From assembly GCA_907165135.1 (NCBI GenBank), contig OU015566.1, forward strand, positions 9,920,001 through 9,984,000: DNA of 64,000 nucleotides. The letters run 5' to 3'. A model generated the notes under the pieces. That model did not search any database. It was not told the DNA's origin and saw only the letters and a list, made by a program, of their open reading frames with translations. Both the position numbers and the translations under genes were made by a program. Shown here in pieces: positions 35,118-61,263 of the stretch (its first letter is position 1; every line of letters starts with the position of its first letter). This DNA comes from Oikopleura dioica. Taxonomy: Eukaryota; Animalia; Chordata.

Positions 35118-38100
35118 TTAAGCTTCGCAGACGGCCTGGACGGGCTTGGCATCCCAGTAGTGCCAGTTGACACCGAGTTGTCGCCAGGTTCGCTCAAGGT
35201 ATTGTCCACCGAAGGCGTTGTCAAGAGCGTTACACTCATCAACGAAGGTCTCTTCGAAGGCGAATTCAGCGGACTCGGCAATGGTGTTGACGGTGGTTCG
35301 ACCAGCGTTGTTGAATTCCTGGACGGTGCCTTCTGGGAAAGTACCATCTCGGAAGAACTGACCGAAAGTCTGTCGCATGACTTGCTTGAGGTTCTGGATC
35401 TCAGCAGTGGCGAGCCATTCGTCGGTCTTCTTCTGGTCATCAGTGTACTGTCCTTCGAGTCGTGGGACAACGAAGTTCTGGTTGTACATGAAGTGAGCTT
35501 CAGTGCAGTGGCAAGTCTTGGTGAAGACTCCGTTCTCGTCTGGGGCGCAGTTTCGGGCATTGAATTGGGTAATGTAGATTGGACCGAAGTCATCATCACC
35601 CTAAAATTATTTGTTAAAATAACGTCAAGAAAATTTTAAATATGAGTTTAATCAACAATTTAAAAATGAATCAACTTACTCGAAGGGCATCAAGAGCAGC
35701 TCGGGTGTTGCAAGTCCATCCGTAAGAAGTAAGGAATCGATCGTACTGGACGTTGCACTCCTTGGTCTCACCATCATCAGCGCATCCGAAAACTTCCTTG
35801 ACACCATCGGCTTCAGGGCCAAAGATCTCTTCGAGGATTCGGTCAGAAAAGTTGGATGGAACAACGAAGCCCTTGGCTTCAGCGGCTTCGACAGCTTCGA
35901 TTTCTCTCCAGAGGAACTTGTTCTTGTGGGTGAAGAAAGAGAGATGGTTGAATTCCCATTGGTCGTGATCGTTGTAAGACCAGGAGATAGGAGTGTGCTT
36001 CTTGATCTTCTTGCTGGAGACAAGAGTGAAAAGATCGTCAACGATCATCTTGCCATCGATAACTGGGGCGAATCCGGGTTCGAGAGTGATCTTGGAGGAA
36101 GAGTGTCGGGCGGTACCAGCGGCCTTGTTGGCAGCATCTCGGATTTCTTCTCGGGAGTACTGTCGGAGGCAGTCGATGGTGTCACATCCCTGGAATTTGA
36201 GGACGAGCTTGGTGGTATCCTCACCGACTTGAGTGCTGACGGCGTTGTTGACACCCATGCACATAACATTGACCTTGTTGTAGAATGGCCAGGACTCTTC
36301 GAGGACTGTGTGCCACCAGACTGCTTCACCAGCAGAGGAGGAACCAGAAAGAACGGCTTCAGCTGGGTTACCACCGAAGATTGGAGCGTATTTCTGAGCC
36401 CATTTCATAGCACCCTGCTGATCCTGGAGACCGAAGTTGGATCGGTATTTCTGGCCATCTTCAATTTCTGGGAGGAGGAGGTAAGCGAACATACCAAGTC
36501 GGTAAGCAACAGAGACAACCATAACGTTCTGTTCAGTGACCATATCGTAAGCGTCATATCGGTTGAAACCGTGGTTTCCTCCGCCACCGTGGAGGTAGTA
36601 GACGATTGGAACACCTTCAGAGTTGGCGAGAGCGTCCTTCTTGACAGCGATGTTGACAGTAAGACAATCTTCCTGGGAGATTTCTTGTTGGACACCGTAG
36701 CATCGGTGGCAAGCGCACATGTTACCCCATTCAGTAGCGTCAACGGCTTCGTTTTCGTACTTGATGAGGACTGGAGACTTCCATCGGAGAGCACCTTCTG
36801 GGGCCTCAGCGTATCGGATACCTCGGCAATCGACAACGTCATCTCGGTCAAGGCAAGTGAACGTGACGCCGAGGTTCGTCTCGACATCGCAAGTTTCACC
36901 ATTGCAAGAGAAGGATTTGAGCTCAAAGTCAGAAGCTGGGAGTTCGGCGTTGAGGTAATCGAAGTAGGTCTTTTCTTCTTCGACAACAACTTCTTCAGCC
37001 TCTTCGGCTTCGAGGAGAGAGGCAGCAAGAACGGCTTTGGCAGCAGCCTTGGCGGCTTCGAGGGCCTGTTTGGCTTCAAGAGCGGCGAGTTCGGCTTCGG
37101 CTTCTTCAGAACCACCGAATTGACCCTTGGAGGCACCGGTAATCTGGAATCCATCGGCAACATTGTCCTTGTCAAGAGCTGGACCACCTTGGGAAGTGGC
37201 GACAATGTAGTCGTTTTCGACGCAATCGTCATAGTGGAATTGATCAAGAGCTCGGCACTCATCGACGTAGGTCTTCTCCTGAGCCCATTCGTAACCGTTG
37301 GCTGGGCTAATGACGTTGTAGGTTTCGTGTTGATCATCATCGATGTCGGACCACTTTTCGATGGTTCCGGCTGGGAACTCACCGGTTCGGAAGTATTCAC
37401 CCCATGCGGATCGCATTCTGTCGACAAGCCAGACGGACTCCTTGGCGGACATATCGTAGTAAAGTCGACCGAGGTTATCGTCAATGACCTTAATGAATGG
37501 CTTAGCTTATTGTTTTTCCTGATGTAGATTTAATTTGAGTAAAAACTGTGCTTACCTTAAGGTTGTAGTCACCATAGACGAATGGACCTTCACCGGTGTG
37601 GCAGGTCTTTCGGTAGTCACCGGTAACTGGATCGGGATCACAGTTCTTGGCGGAGAATTGTGTGACGTAAAGGGGACCGAGTTCAGGGAAGTTCTCTGGG
37701 TCAGAGAGGGCACCCTTAAGACCCCATCGTGTGTTGCAAACCCAGTTCATTGAGTTGACCCATCGAGAGAAGATGTCGTTGCAGTCCTCACCGTTGTCTT
37801 CGCAGAAGAAGTTCTCTTTGATGACGGAAATATCATCGTAGTTGGCGTAGAATCGCTCAATGAGAGTGTTTCCGAATGGGTATGGGACCTTGTGTCCAGT
37901 GGAGGCCTTGGCAGCAGAAATGTCTCCAAGTTGATCAGTCATGAACTTGTACATAGAGTTAGCAAAGGCAAGATGGTTGAAGGCCCAGTTATCGTGCTCG
38001 GAGTAAGACCAGGCGATGGGAGTGTGTGGTCGAACGTTACCGTCTCGAACGTCAAACATGAGCTGTTGTCGACCGAATCGACCATCGACGACCATACCGA

Positions 38101-40095
38101 AACCCGGTTCGAGGGTGATCTTGGTTGGATGTCGAGCACCGTAGGCAGCAGCGTCACCAGCGTGAGCAAGATCATCGTGCTCCTGGGCTCGCATGCAAGG
38201 AGTGTCAGAGCAGTTGAGCTCGCCGTAGACAACATCTCGGAGCTTGGGGGTGTGGTCGAGTGGGTACTCAGTGTTAAGACCCATGTTCATCATGTTGACT
38301 CGCTTGAAGTATGGCCAAGCGCATGGGACGGTAAGGAGACGCCAGACGATTTCGGCACCGGAAGATCGGGCAGAGAAGGAAGCGTTCTCTGGATCAGCAC
38401 CGAAGATTGGACCGTAGGTCTGGGAGAAGGCCATGGCGGCAACTGGATCCTGGAGACCCCAGTTGGTCTGGAAATTCTGGCCCTGTTCGATCTCTGGGAG
38501 TGTGTAGAAACCGAAGATACCGAATCGGTAACCGATGTTGAAGATAGCAACCTGCTCCTTCTTGATCAAGTCAGATGATCGCCATCGGTTGTTACCGTGG
38601 TTGAAACCACCACCGTGGACGACGTAGATGATTGGGACGAGTCGGCCTTCTTCAAGAGCATCTCGTGGGACGGAGATGTTGATGTTCAAGCAATCCTCGG
38701 AGGTTCCGTCAGCATGATGGTGCTGGGCGCAAGCGTCACCGAAGTCAGAGAAGTCATAGGTCTTTCCTTCGAAGTTGAGCTTGACCAAAGGCTGGGTCCA
38801 TCGCATCTCGTGGAGTGGTGGAATAGCGTATGGGACACCTCGGAAGTCAACAACACCGTCTCGGTCCTGACCGATGAAGACAGTACCGTCGGAGAGGGTA
38901 AGGGTGGCCTGGCCATTCTCGTCGATGCAGAAACCAGTTCGCCTCAAGTTCTCTGGAGCGTGGAGAAGGTTCTCATCAACAAGGTTGCTATCGTAGGTCA
39001 TTTCTGGAAGACCGTGGTTGGGGAAGTCATTGATCCAATCAATGCATTCGCCAGACTCATCGGGCTGCTGGACGTTGACGTGCTCGGCGCAACCAGTTGG
39101 AGTGTAGTTGTAACCCTCAGCATCGGCATCGGAGCAAGTCTCGGTCTGGATCTGGCAATTGTCCTCACCGTTGACGCAAAGTTTGACGTCACAGGTGACC
39201 TGAACTTCCTGGGAGTTGACGCTAGCATCGCTAGAGAAGGAGTTGAAGGTGAATCCAGCCTTCTTGGACTGAAGGTATTCGTGGACAGGTCCAGTCTTGG
39301 TGACTCCGAGGGCGTTGGAGTAGCAGTTGTCCTTGATGATCTGAGCAGAAACAGCTCGAGCACCACCGAGGTTAACAGAGCAGTCGGAGACGTAGAACTG
39401 GACGAGGTCCTGGTCAGCGCTCCATTCAACATCAGCCCAGACACGCGCACCGATGTAAGCGAGACCGTCGATGGGAGAGGTTCGGGACTGGTCGGAGAAA
39501 AGGTTGAGGGAAAAGGCGGAGGAGAGATCACCGTGGGCGGAGAGCTCGCCATCGGCGACAGCGCTGACAACGTTGTAATCCTTGCTCGAGACGCTGACGG
39601 TGGAGTCGTATGTGCATGAAGCGGAAAGGGAGGCAGATTTGGCGGTGTTGTAAAGCTCAATGTCTCCAACGGAGGCGAACGAGGAGTCACTGTCGACGGT
39701 GAGTTCGAGATTGAAGTTGATGTCTCCGTCGGCGTTGGAGGCGGCAGACATACCGCAATCACCCAAGTTGCATTGGACGCAGTATTGGCCATCTTCGAAC
39801 TTAGCGTTGGGGAAGAGAGGCGGAGTTCTCGTCGATACCGAAGTAGTCGGCAGAGAATTTTACTTCCATCGAGTCAGCAGAGCAGCTGATGGAGGCGCAT
39901 CCTTCTTTAAGGTTGCAAGTACCGGAAGCTTCATCGAAGCTCCAGCACTCGGAGGAGGGGCATGGGTTGGCAGCTTAATGTTAATTAGAGCTCTGTTGAA
40001 TGATTCAAGGGGGTGAAATTTTCTCTTGGGGATTTTTTTTCTCTCGACTTACCTGAAGATTTGGCCAAAGCCAAAACACTTGGGAGGACCTTCAT
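35118..40095 (-). CDS. Secreted oikosin-like protein: Cys-rich/ZP-like domain + two tandem carboxylesterase (alpha/beta hydrolase) domains; one frameshift at ~39810
   Basis: Signal MKVLPSVLALAKSS, then ANPCPSSECWSFD...C. ZP-like segment (SASCTY...VQFYVSDCSV...VTCDVKLC). Two COesterase domains: FRGVPYA/CRGIRYA, EDCL, HGGG, GIFGF/GMFAY, and terminal His motifs KTCHTGE/KTCHCTE. Strong C-ending codon bias. Confidence 0.85.
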
Positions 40096-55582: not shown

Positions 55583-56360
55583 ATGAAAGTTATTGAGCTC
55601 AGTCTTGCACTAGGCCTGGTAGAGGGTTGTTTTTGGTTGAAAAACGATGAGCCAGAGAGGAAAACTACAGTATCTCGACCACCTGTGAGGTTGAAGACTG
55701 TTCCAAGAGGAAATCCGAAGGTTTCTTTGTCGAAGAAAGGAGGTTTGTTTTTATCAATTGCTCATTCAATGGTGTTTATTGAAACTTAGGCTTTATATTT
55801 TGTTGTATTCAAATATTTATTGGGGGTGTGTCACTGATAGAACATGTTTTCACGTTATTTCCTTCTCTAAAGACCAGTTACGAAGAGGATTCTTTAGCAA
55901 ACGCATATTTTAGGTCCAAAAGGAAAATTCTCTAAAAAGCGAAGAAAAGGTAAAAAGAAGCCCCCACCACCACCTGTCAAAGAATTCGTCGGAGAACGTC
56001 CAACTTGGCAAAGTGTTCCGCAAAAAGGCCAAATTTGCAAAGGGACAAGTTCAGCCGCAGTTCCCTGCAAGGATCCAATCAAAATCGGCGCCAAGTGCGA
56101 TGAAAAATTCCAATGGAGTACAAATGGATACATACAGAGCATCGTTCACTGCAAAAAGAATCCGAAAGGAGGCGTTATCCGGAAGGAGCTTCGACAAGAA
56201 TGCAACTATGACTCTGGAGTTCTACAGGTTTTGACTTCTTATCTGTCTTCTTTTTTATCTAAATTTCTAGTGCTGGCAACACTGGTCAACAACAGGATGC
56301 CACGACGATACATGCCAAAGTGACAAGCTTGGAAACGGCTGGCTACCCCCTAAATCCTAA
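55583..56360 (+). CDS. Small secreted basic Cys-rich protein (3 exons), mostly missed by the ORF track
   Basis: MKVIELSLALGLVEGC signal. Exon 2 (from ~55914) PKGKFSKKRRKGKKKPPPPP...ICKGT...PCKDP...KCDEK...HCKK...ECNYD. Exon 3 CWQHWSTTGCHDDTCQ...PKS*. GT-AG introns are in phase. Confidence 0.7.
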
Positions 56361-56589
56361 ATTTTATTTCATAAATCCGTTCCTAAATCTACAAGTCCTT
56401 TTTCTAACTCCTTCATTCGCATACTGATTTACCGCTGTCAATAAACTCCCATTCATCGAGCTGCGCGTAGCTTGAGATAGGCTTTACGTCCTCCAGTTAA
56501 ATAAGTGACGTTACGAAATTAAAACGTTGGCGTTTTTATTCAGTAATTACTGATAGAAGAGTTGTGAGGACACTTTGTCCAATAATGAA

Positions 56590-59250
56590 TTATGAAGATG
56601 GAAATCTAACGAGTTTCAGAGTGTATGCAATTGGATAAAGATACCATGTATCATACTTCATGGTTTTTCCGAAATTTTCATTCACAAGCTTCAGTCTCAT
56701 TCCTTGGTCGTAGAAGACAATATCTCCATTTTCATAGACACAGCGCGTCGAAATAATTTCCAAATTTGCGTAGTAAGGATGGGTCTGCTTGATTTTCAGG
56801 ACTTTTATTTGGTTTAAGATTACAAATAGTGAAAAATTCTTGTCTTCAAGTAATTATAAATGATGGAATATTTGTACGCATTATGGAAATATAATCATAA
56901 CCTAGTCTGATTCCGATGCATTGGTGAATTCGTTGTTTTGAAGGACGTATTCGCAATTTTTGATATTGTCGACTGTCATCTGATGAAAATGTACTCCTCG
57001 CTCCTTGATATTAATCGCCACAGTTACAGTAAGTGGGCGGTCAAAGATGAAATTTTCATGAAGAGTTACTAAGAAATAGTTTTTTTACCATTTAATGCTG
57101 AGCCTACCTGTTTGATAAGTACAATAAGATAAATCTGGTCGCGTCAGATTTGTTTGGCCAAGGCGCCTTATTATTTCCCATCCTGATTCCATGATATATG
57201 TTTTGGTACAAATTCGCTCCAGCAGATTCACGATATCGTTCATCTGATACCCGTTTTCTTTTTCGCTCGGATTCAAGTTCAGTCCAGCCATACTTCGAGG
57301 GTAAACAACGTAATTTAAAGTGGCAAGAATTTTCTCGGGTGTATGAGTCTTTTGTCGGTCCTCGAATTGAAGATCTTTCCTTAGACTGTGTCGAATAAGA
57401 GTCGTTACACAAATCGGCACGCAAAGATGACTGTACTTCTGGTTGAGGATATTTTTTGAGAGGTTGACCATTCCAGAATAAACACATTTTGATATTTCCT
57501 CCTTCAAAAAGGAAACCTGACATGACCGAGATAGATTATCATCATCCAAACAATAAAATCTGTCGATACTTTCGATTGTTATTATTCTTTTTACTCGATT
57601 TATAAAAGAGTAAATATCTTGAATGTCGCCTTTCACCAAATCATGGATTCGTTCTGCCCCACAATTCTTTAAGCAATAGGCCATTAAATTTAGCAACATT
57701 TTTAATTTTTTACCTCCATTAAATTATCGATAAAGTTTCGATCACTCTCCGAGGCTGGTCGATACAGTAATCTCCATGCAGTTTTCCAGCCACAAAAGAG
57801 ATAAATATAAACAGGGTGCAGTGAGTTATTACGACTTCTATCTGCAAGAGTTAGTTGGTATTGCATCGAAAATCCAGGTGTTCCGGCAGCTACAAGTCAA
57901 CGTTATTATTTGCCGAAATTCAAAACGATTTTTTTATACCTAGAGCGCTTATAAATCTGTATTTGTCCCCTCTTCTTGCGTATCCCATCTGGCGATAACT
58001 GAGCTTGCCGGAAGTTTCACAAACCAATCCGAAATCGCATATTTTTAGTTGGTATCCAGGTCTACTTTCGTCCCAAAGAAGCAGAAAATTTGCTAGTTTC
58101 CTGTCACAATGTTGAATTCCGATTTCGGATAAATATGCAAGACCATCAGTAATTTCTGTCGCCATTTTCTTTCTCCTTTTTAGGCAAAGTTGGTTCGATT
58201 TCAAGAGCGAGCGAATGCTTAAATCGCATTTTTCCATTATCGTTATCCATCCGAGGCAATCTTTCATGTGAGTATCAAATGGATGAAATAGTTCTATATT
58301 TACAAAGTGCCTTATAATATTGGGATGAAATGGAATTTGCTTTACATTGGCGTCTTTTTCATTTAGAGTAAATCTGTCTGCTTTCGTGAAGTTCGATGAC
58401 AAATGAATCTTCGCCCGAATTTTCGATTCTTGAAGTTCAAGTCCAAGCTCAAATTTCTTTGTAAATAGAAAGGGATCAAAATGATGAATCCGAACTGCAT
58501 AAGATCTATCTCCGAATATTTGAGGAATAACCAGCGCTTCTCCACCCTCTGAAATTTTTCGTATTTTTTTCATTCTCCATTTTCCCTTTTCCTCCATAAT
58601 TTCCGATCGTTTAATGATTACATTATATAATGAAGGATTTGCTGCTAGAATCGAGCTTTGAAAGGCTGTGATTTCGTACATTTGAGGCTCATCAGTTAAA
58701 TCCTTTTGGATCGCGAATTTCTTTTCTTCTTGGAGAAATCTGCAAAATTTCCAGTGATATGCATCTTCCTTGTTTTTGAATTCTTGTCTCTCAATTGAAG
58801 CAATCAAGCGGCACTTTTCTGTTCTTGTCGTAATTCTCTTCAATGATGGAAAAAAGTCGGACATCCATCTTTTGATTTTGATTTTTGAAAGTTCAGGAGG
58901 ATGATCATCTATCGGCTCACTCCATCTCAATGCAGTTAAAATCGCTAGCTCGTCAATCATTTTTGACCTTGTAATTTCACTTGCAAGGTACTCGGTGCAC
59001 TTAGAAAACAAAAAAAAAATCGGCGTTTCTGAATGGCGGGAAAGGGGCTTAAAAGAATCGAACCATGACCCGCTTTGTGGGGATGAATAATCGGCGAAAT
59101 CGCGAACCTGCGAAATTCGAAAATAAGAAAGAACTGACAAGTAGGATCACTTCAAATATCAGCGCCAAGCTCTTCCTTGATTTCAAAAAGAAAATTTTTC
59201 ATATCAGAATTCTTATTATCATTTATTTCTTCAAATAAATAAGAGGAAGA
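56590..59250 (-). CDS. Protein kinase domain fused to a C-terminal papain-like cysteine protease domain; start codon uncertain; possible in-frame stop at 56904-56902
   Basis: Kinase motifs ISEGGEALV, YAVRI, HPNII, HCDRKLAN, DFG, AGTPG. Downstream exons give NQKYSHLCVP, FHQMTV and YVLQN. A further coding-like exon VLKIKQTHPYY...YPIAYTLKL* ends at 56590. Confidence 0.8.
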
Positions 59251-61263
59251 ATCTATCTTGAGAACTGAATTGTATCATAATTTTCTAAGTTGGTTTTCTA
59301 AAGTACGCTGCTGCAAAACACCGGCTCGACCGCAAGAAGGTGTAACACGTGACCTTACGGTAACGTCTTAAGCTTTGGTCAGAACCTAAACATGACTAGT
59401 GGGTAACTTTTCTAAAAATCAAATAAGATTTCAAAAGCGAATAATATCCTCATAATCCAAAAACCGTCATTTCATTACTTTTACGAAGTCGATATTACGA
59501 CGAAGTTATCGTAAGTACCAAGGATCGAATACAGCTGCTGCTCTAGAACTACGGCCCTATAAATGATGTCACTTAATTTCGCGCTGTCTGAGGAGTTCAA
59601 AACACTCATCCTCGAAATCAATTTAAGATTTCAACGCCGCGCAAATTGCCCGTTATTAGCATGAGTACTCTTGACTGAGCATTATTTTCAATCCGACCCA
59701 GGCGTCTTCATCCCTCCTCGAAAAAGAATTACACAGTAAACTGTCTTATCAATGTCAATTTAGATCAGCCGTGCTAGTTAACTTCGGAGAAGTTGAAGGG
59801 ACTGAAGAAATTTGAGACAGTAGGGGAGCTGTAGAACATTTCTTCTATTGACGTGGCTTAAAAATAGAGGGTTATGTTCGAGTATCACTTGTTTCTCTAT
59901 TACTACTAGTGAGTCGCCTTCTTTGTATTTACCGAATTCTCCCTTGTGTACTAGAAAACACAGACTACCAAATACCTTGATAAGCCCCCGCTGAGCATTT
60001 GTTGCTCAGTGATAAGAATGCTCCAACAAGAATCCACGACAAAGATATTTCTCCCGAATCGGGTAAATAGCCCCACCTTACATATCCTCCCTCCGAGATT
60101 CATTATCAAAGTTCATTCGCTTTTTTTTGAAAGAAACATTTATTAGAATGATGAGAAAGCAATTTCTGGTTTAATTAATATGTGCAGGAGATGCAAAATC
60201 TGGCGATTATCTTGGTCGGACTTCCTCCGTTTTCGTTTACTCAATGCTGGGCCGGATCATATTCTCAGCGGAGGATGTGGCCAACTTCGATTAAAACGCG
60301 TGAGACTTCCATGTGAGAGTACTGTTATCATCATACTGAATATCGCCGGCTACAGCAAGGTCGAAAATCCACGGAAAATATTTTTGCGGATGATATTTTG
60401 AAATTTATCAGAACATCTCATCGCTCTGACAATCGGCCTAAAACCAAATAGTGGAGGTAGAAGTTAACGGATTTGACAGGTGTATGTGTAGCTGACCCCA
60501 CCTACTCCTAAGTCCAGGTCCCGACGCCGCAAGAGGATTACCCGACGAAAAAGGTGCCCATTTATACGTGATCAAACGAACTTTCGTGAGAAGTTGAAAA
60601 TTAGTTTTCTGAACTCAAATTTTCGGCCCAAAAAGAAAAAATCCACGAAAAAGGAACTGATTACGAAAGAGGAAGCGAGCTAGGGGTCATTGTAGATTAG
60701 CAGAGAGCAGTAAATTGGCGCACGTGATGCACCTGTTTCCCTCGCTTTATCAATCTTCAACTTTGACGAAAACGAGCAAGGAGCATCTGTCCACGCTGAA
60801 GCTCACGTTTCTTGACAAGCATTTCTTGTCTTTTTAGCTCGAATAAAGGTAGAATGGAGGTAAGATGACACGAGTCTGGATTTGTCGAATTCGCTTTTGT
60901 TTTTGTTTAGAAACATTTTTCGCTGATTTTCGCGGATAATGTTGGAACTCTCCAATAGCTAACTCTCATTTTATTATGAGAAAAATACCGAAAAATATTT
61001 TTTGTCAGGAAACAAACTGAATTGGAATATTTACCGAATAATTACGATTAATGTTCGGCCCCAAATATAGCCAAATGGACCAGTTAAAGTTGTTACCTGC
61101 AATGGTCGGAAAATATATATTTTCGATTTTGACAAAAATTTCAACTAGGGGCAAAATCATTATGTTGATCGTTTTAGTCATCATCGAAAATCTAGAAATC
61201 ACCTGAAAAAAACTTTTTTTTATTGCCTGGGGCGATTCTGAGACCATTTTTATGAATTTCCTA

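Follow-up and report, generated by a model that had tools for sequence, protein, structure and literature searches.

A putative kinase and papain-fold protein family of Oikopleura dioica, examined at a locus whose own protease domain may be truncated

The papain fold and the protein kinases are each well known; an architecture in which a papain-type protease follows the kinase within a single animal chain has not been described. The only described polypeptides that we found to combine a papain-like fold with a kinase are the EDR1/CTR1-type Raf-like kinases, which represent another branch of the superfamily; there the EDR1 domain lies N-terminal to the kinase, in plant proteins, whereas the protease is C-terminal in the Oikopleura dioica family described here. 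The occurrence of a papain-like fold and a protein kinase in one polypeptide has been reported for the plant EDR1 domain (PF14381), which is closest to the C71 and C93 peptidases, in an acetyltransferase section that also covers transglutaminase-core families (PMC10318531). The O. dioica locus lies on the minus strand at 56590-59250 of a stretch of 64,000 nucleotides (nt), hereafter the window (GenBank assembly GCA_907165135.1, contig OU015566.1, positions 9,920,001 to 9,984,000). A reading made from the letters alone (the original prediction) had proposed here a single-chain kinase-protease with a papain-like Cys-His-Asn triad, and had recognised no named animal family with this architecture. 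The literature on the Oikopleura kinome or a kinase-protease family indeed yielded no description of the family, so that the latter remark stands for animals, with plant EDR1 as a precedent outside them. We regard the locus as probably a member of a large O. dioica family in which one chain, about 700 residues long in intact paralogues, carries a divergent kinase between an N-terminal region, whose fold is unknown, and a clan CA domain at the C-terminus.

The gene model was derived from the window sequence and comparison with paralogues, and the exons were joined in a script to check frame and length. Four exons (58960-57940, 57889-57714, 57666-57108 and 57068-56902) gave one continuous frame of 1923 nt, that is, 640 codons and a stop, with the following parts (slashes mark splice junctions).

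57940..58960, minus strand: exon 1, from ATG 58960; N-terminal region of about 130 residues and unknown fold, then kinase N-lobe and catalytic core; motifs GGEA loop, AVR, HCDRKLAN and DFG (basis: Pfam Pkinase and motif conservation in paralogues)
57890..57939, minus strand: intron 1, 50 nt, GT..AG; junction ISAL/AAGTPGF matches the public model P0102
57714..57889, minus strand: exon 2, end of the kinase activation segment (GTPGF) and alpha-F region (LFCGWKTAW)
57667..57713, minus strand: intron 2, 47 nt, GT..AG
57108..57666, minus strand: exon 3, 186 codons and 1 nt; end of the kinase C-lobe or linker, then the helical half of the papain fold; motifs conserved CLDDxNLxxS (C-lobe end or linker), YPRSMAGLNLNP and SGWEIIR
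57069..57107, minus strand: intron 3, 39 nt, GT..AG, phase 1; junction YQT/V/TLHENF matches P0102
56902..57068, minus strand: exon 4, first strands of the beta half; terminates at the in-frame TAG 56904-56902

The ATG at 58960 aligns with the annotated starts of paralogues. A kinase had been placed upstream in the same spliced frame, and the three GT-AG introns, the 640-residue frame and a match of exon 1 to Pfam PF00069 (E 6.9e-10, 39.2 bits, cut-off 31.7) bear this out. The catalytic codons of the original prediction were likewise found at their proposed minus-strand positions, with both spacings intact: Gln475 (CAG, 57441-57439) and Cys481 (TGC, 57423-57421) are six residues apart in exon 3 (NQKYSHLC), and His614 (CAT, 56985-56983) and Asn630 (AAC, 56937-56935) are 16 residues apart in exon 4 (HQMTVDNIKNCEYVLQN).

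The public gene model OKI2018_I69.chr1.g2663 maps to the locus. The public model P0102 (199 residues) starts at an internal Met of the kinase and ends at TAG 56904-56902, and its splice junctions are those of the four-exon model wherever it covers them. It also treats 57594-57244 (351 nt, 117 codons) as an intron and thereby loses the catalytic Gln and Cys; an intron of this length is atypical for the family and against the 49-nt genome median. Because all paralogues keep this stretch as coding sequence, the 351-nt intron is probably an annotation artefact. In the Okinawa assembly of O. dioica (64.3 Mb, 19 scaffolds), the median intron measures 49 bp and 11% of the introns are non-GT/AG (PMC8008620).

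Four O. dioica RNA runs were mapped onto 56300-59500 at 90% likeness. They contained no read of the window gene and hence no splice junctions; matches at the locus were confined to conserved motifs of 35-45 nt and diverged beyond them. Judging by this pattern, the matching reads are from paralogues or from a divergent population. In three bulk oligo-dT runs, reads matched only 57263-57308 (the YPRSMAGLNLNP region) and 58224-58263 (the LGWITIMEKC region), at 90-95%, before diverging. Such motif-only matches indicate that at least some relatives of the kinase part and of the protease part are transcribed.

The fold of the C-terminal domain was studied on an AlphaFold2 model of the public paralogue P0040, which was computed from a family alignment of 113 sequences and stands in for the window copy. 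Residues 65-310 of this model have a predicted local distance difference test score (pLDDT) above 90. In a Foldseek search against the PDB, the highest ranks went to cathepsins S, L, K and B, staphopain, phytochelatin synthase and the ComA C39 peptidase, with marginal E values of about 2e-3 and a probability of about 1. We also used VIA-align, a structure search independent of Foldseek, against 48,161 representative chains; according to the tool, best Z values of 7-8 are common background. Clan CA enzymes filled 50 of the 50 best rows, so that the list was homogeneous, and the top scores rose above the background: calotropain 10.8, xylellain 10.6, Der p 1 10.4, cathepsin B 10.2, PCAT1 9.9 and staphopain 9.6, with the C39 domains of PCAT1 and ComA at 9.6-9.9. 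The cytosolic enzymes followed, namely UfSP (8.2), ZUFSP/Mug105 (7.8), ATG4 (7.5) and the coronavirus PLpro (6.7). Moreover, shape and feature searches of the ESM Atlas led to clusters of Peptidase_C39_2, C39, C1 and Mac-1.

The placement of the putative catalytic residues agrees with these matches. The P0040 model has the two lobes of clan CA, one helical and one a beta barrel, and Cys precedes His in the chain. Cys71 opens helix 71-88 at the N-terminus of the central helix, His214 lies within strand 210-222, and Asn232 directly follows strand 227-231. In a full-length AlphaFold model of another public paralogue, P0286, Cys475 opens helix 475-491, His608 lies within strand 605-616, and Asn624 is placed likewise. 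A conserved oxyanion-type Gln stands ahead of the Cys, and the His is followed by Asn as the third residue. In papain, H159 and N175 are offset around a hairpin turn exactly as the His and Asn of the family are. On these models, the C-terminal domain has a papain (clan CA) cysteine-peptidase fold; the clan CA assignment of the original prediction is backed by the structural searches, whose matches are almost exclusively clan CA peptidases.

Sequence comparison gave no such matches. Pfam and NCBIfam found nothing significant for the protease part in the window exons, nor did Pfam in five public paralogues and the 113 members of the family alignment (A4), and three profile or single-sequence searches of the protease part against PDB sequences returned no significant match. 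Weak glutaminase matches (E 0.18) were rejected. Neither PF00112 (C1) nor PF14381 (EDR1) matched the window exons, the public paralogues or the 113 family members; PF03051 matched one of the 113, weakly. The C39 and C39_2 models (PF03412 and PF13529) matched neither the public paralogues nor the 113 members, so that the likeness to C39 is structural only.

Among the described systems, the papain C1 peptidases (cathepsins B, L and S, calotropain, Der p 1 and xylellain) are the best structural matches (Z 10.2-10.8, 155-179 residues aligned). They share with the family a Gln six residues before the Cys, the Cys at a helix N-terminus, and His and Asn on a beta hairpin with a papain-like offset. 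The starts of the alignment ranges presumably place the family's Gln and Cys on Q23/C29 of cathepsin B and Q29/C35 of Der f 1, if the stretch between is taken as gapless. Unlike C1 peptidases, the family domain has no detectable sequence similarity to them, no signal peptide, propeptide or C1 disulphide pattern, and sits behind a kinase. The C39/C39_2 domains of ComA and PCAT1 have a minimal papain fold like that of the family (Z 9.6-9.9, root-mean-square deviation 2.8-2.9), are its nearest ESM Atlas clusters and share the Gln six residues before the Cys; range starts put Gln and Cys on Q11/C17 of ComA, and the Cys on C21 of PCAT1. However, C39 enzymes are bacterial, fused to ABC transporters and have Asp as the third residue, and their hidden Markov models do not match. 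Finally, the cytosolic clan CA proteases of ubiquitin-like (UBL) proteins (UfSP1/2, ZUFSP and ATG4) offer an intracellular papain fold (Z 6.9-8.2), but score below C1 and C39, have a different catalytic arrangement and lack a kinase fusion. The domain is therefore nearest to C1 and C39 by structure and belongs to neither by sequence.

A search of the species' own genome (64.28 Mb, 19 contigs) with exon 3 gave 124 matches at 25-58% identity; as some copies yield two matches, these correspond to roughly a hundred loci. Thirty paralogous loci were fetched, and all 30 read, on one strand and within about 2-3 kb, from the N-terminal region through the kinase to both halves of the C-terminal domain. 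In L014 and L015, a single open reading frame (ORF) spans the N-terminus and the kinase and runs into the protease domain. The public O. dioica proteins P0281, P0283, P0284 and P0286 (690-710 residues) carry all parts, and their names and precomputed Pfam hits mention the kinase only ('protein kinase domain-containing'). The possibility raised with the original prediction, that kinase and protease exons belong to separate genes, finds no place in this picture. A profile search of 1.84 billion cluster representatives returned only 172 relatives at E <= 0.001, of which all named ones are from O. dioica and the others are metagenome ORFs; a scan of IMG/VR for two conserved peptide patterns found no viral relative. 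By these searches, the family is so far restricted to O. dioica and metagenome ORFs.

Conservation within the family follows the proposed active site. In the family alignment, Gln is present in 59 of 59 sequences, Cys in 59 of 61 (two have Ser), His in 64 of 68 and Asn in 65 of 77, so that the triad is, as anticipated, conserved among paralogues. One of the most divergent relatives reads HAVILFDHDDKTYHFKNS around the third catalytic residue, which resembles the His-to-Asn stretch of papain.

The kinase part is divergent. HxDxKxxN and DFG are present in the window (HCDRKLAN and DFG), and in paralogues the corresponding Asp, Lys and Asn were found in 8/8 each and the DFG Asp in 9/11. Against PDB sequences, its top matches are weak and of various kinds (PLK2, DAPK and HIPK2, E about 2e-4). 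The kinase part of the full-length P0286 model matched at least 500 solved kinases at E <= 1e-3, including DAPK1, Pho85 and ERK at E of about 4e-6. On the model, this part is a real but unclassified kinase fold. The full-length model has a mean pLDDT of 87 and a predicted template modelling score of 0.87, and these values suggest that N-terminal region, kinase and protease adopt a compact, fixed arrangement. Its sole low-confidence segment is the linker that carries the strongly conserved CLDDxNLTKS.

At the locus itself, the in-frame TAG at 56904-56902 lies only 10 codons past the Asn, a point that the original prediction had missed; read as is, the protein ends in ...NASESD. Two more features follow.

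56801..56901, minus strand: AT-rich stretch of about 100 nt with two further in-frame stops (56883-56881 and 56856-56854)
56590..56800, minus strand: conserved domain end, VLKIKQTHPYY ... WYLYPIAYTLKL; same frame, open; TAA 56592-56590

The downstream stretch is open in the same frame over 87 codons, the last 69 of which (56800-56593) show clear homology to the residues that close the domain and make up its final strands in paralogue models. The conserved domain end thus sits behind three in-frame stops. Most paralogues have no intron at the TAG site, whereas the three closest ones (L002, L005 and L007) have a phase-1 intron exactly there. Their donors read CCAG/gttaat in L005, CCAG/gtaggt in L007 and CCAG/gaacag, a GA donor, in the closest paralogue, L002. 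The window retains the acceptor (aaaag/TC), and its donor position reads TCAG/ACTAGgttatg, with no G-start donor in phase 1 or 2 and the sole GT after the TAG. Canonical splice rescue of the TAG is ruled out, and only phase-0 GA or GC donors could work; one possible way past the stop would be a non-canonical phase-0 GA-AG intron. Without such a splice, the window protein would be short of its final ~70 residues, which correspond to about five strands. The kinase-protease chain proposed for this locus therefore holds for the family, and the window copy's protease may be truncated. That this copy has a complete protease domain appears to us possible, with doubt prevailing.

We infer that the C-terminal domain would be catalytically active, as a thiol hydrolase with the mechanism of papain, in which a Cys-His ion pair would be oriented by the Asn and an oxyanion hole formed by the Gln and the Cys backbone. 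By eye, neither a signal peptide nor a propeptide is recognisable in the window copy, and since a signal peptide is missing the enzyme is probably intracellular. There it would probably act on proteins, or on conjugates of the ubiquitin-like or isopeptide kind, and the chain's own linker is a further candidate substrate. The roles put forward in the original prediction, as a phospho-switched protease, a deubiquitylase-like enzyme or a defence effector, are likewise candidates. With HxDxKxxN and DFG kept but Arg in the place of the beta-3 Lys, the kinase part would serve as an atypical kinase or as a regulatory module that binds nucleotide, in rigid contact with the protease.

Several observations weigh against an active papain-type enzyme at this locus and in its family. 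The convergence of the active-site side chains is read only from secondary-structure positions in the models and from alignment ranges. A few paralogues (L015, L016 and P0122) have Ser for Cys (FLSVPFSV, NLSVPISI), and the Asn position varies in the most divergent members. The beta-3 Lys position, beside an invariant GGEA glycine loop, is Arg (AVR) in 16 of 17 paralogues and Lys in one, an assignment that is provisional as the divergent N-lobe was aligned by eye and with MAFFT. For the window copy in particular, the TAG is present in both known haplotypes, P0102 ends there, and the four RNA runs are without a read of the gene. Could the Gln-Cys and His-Asn spacings simply be a chance resemblance in unrelated coding sequence, as the lack of any Pfam or PDB sequence match might suggest? 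Fold, secondary-structure placement and family conservation concur against chance, which is effectively refuted. A dead pseudo-protease, serving as a binding module for the kinase or pseudokinase, would account for the Ser-bearing copies, and with the atypical beta-3 Arg both halves could be non-enzymatic scaffolds. Yet Gln, Cys and His are near-invariant across paralogues only 40-55% identical, which is hard to explain without catalysis, and we consider loss of activity across the family quite improbable. Less remote, though still unlikely in our view, is that the papain-fold domain is no general protease and either performs other clan CA chemistry (as a UBL protease, deamidase, acyltransferase or transglutaminase-like enzyme) or cleaves its own chain only. 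Such a role would fit the matches to UfSP, ZUFSP/Mug105, ATG4 and PLpro, the missing signal peptide and propeptide, and the linear motif CLDDxNLTKS, which is strongly conserved and lies in the low-confidence linker ahead of the domain. Against it, the best structural matches remain C1 and C39 peptidases, and the residues are arranged as in C1, with the Gln six positions ahead of the Cys and a hairpin that bears His and Asn.

The fate of the window copy is a separate matter from the function of the family. This copy might well be decaying or truncated, the TAG removing the last five strands so that its protease cannot fold, while the family overall is functional; we give this reading serious weight, just short of favouring it. 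It draws on the position of the TAG at the phase-1 intron site of the paralogues, where the window has no G-start phase-1 donor, on the end of P0102 at the same codon and on the silence of the RNA runs. Furthermore, an independent Tara Oceans metagenome contig, 97.5% identical, carries the same TAG and donor-site sequence, so the stop is not an assembly error. On the other hand, exons 3-4 of the window and the Tara allele differ by 7 non-synonymous and 9 synonymous changes, and the ratio of non-synonymous to synonymous polymorphism (pN/pS) of about 0.21 between the two haplotypes implies that the window copy has been under constraint. The downstream piece is still an open frame of 87 codons with conserved family motifs, the closest paralogue uses a GA donor at the same intron in a genome with 11% non-GT/AG introns (PMC8008620), and the RNA runs may derive from a divergent population.

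Further observations concern the arrangement and location of the family. On C4, the contig on which the window occupies 9920001-9984000, at about 3.23 and 3.29 Mb, L015:1666-3672 and L016:1727-3448 are near-identical copies about 55 kb apart. At L024:3152-4939 and at L034:1395-3455, the latter on a metagenome contig, one ORF continues past the end of a protease domain and takes in the N-terminal region and the kinase of the copy that follows. Such run-on frames point to copies standing very close together in tandem, and gene callers fuse them into 'protease-kinase-protease' proteins. That triple architecture, suggested by the metagenome ORF P0258 and the L024 ORF, was rejected: ahead of P0258, the same contig has a separate kinase ORF, so that these frames are best taken as read-through between neighbouring tandem copies. 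Two public models, P0306 (568 residues) and P0215 (489 residues), join family sequence to a fucosyltransferase and a DnaJ domain, respectively, and are probably merged neighbouring genes rather than true fusions. The subfamily of P0283, P0284 and P0286 has a hydrophobic N-terminus (residues 1-25, EFSILAILATCIAGMI) that could be a signal or an anchor; the window copy has no such stretch. The linker before the protease domain contains recurrent N-[LV]-T sequons (P0040 residues 33-35 and 57-59). A hydrophobic N-terminus in one subfamily and sequons in the linker make an intracellular location of the whole family less certain. Elsewhere in the window, 36001-40000 stands out by a G+C content of 0.51-0.54, compared with about 0.40 in the rest.

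The C-terminal domain is without a Pfam model, and a domain definition is now supplied for use in annotation. Many of the family's public gene models are mere fragments, and at this locus the model is a 199-residue fragment that skips the catalytic Cys. The natural variants of the family, with Cys changed to Ser, a variable third residue and the beta-3 Arg, allow tests of how kinase and protease are coupled. The family occupies around a hundred loci, and the genome is among the smallest of any animal; a share of that size implies important lineage-specific biology. Speculatively, and with odds we would call low, these roughly 100 fast-diverging genes in a 64-Mb chordate genome may encode single-chain enzymes with a kinase-like module rigidly coupled to a papain-type protease. 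Together they would form an undescribed intracellular system, specific to the lineage, with proteolysis gated by nucleotide binding or phosphorylation, or the reverse, possibly in immunity, self/non-self recognition or reproductive conflict.

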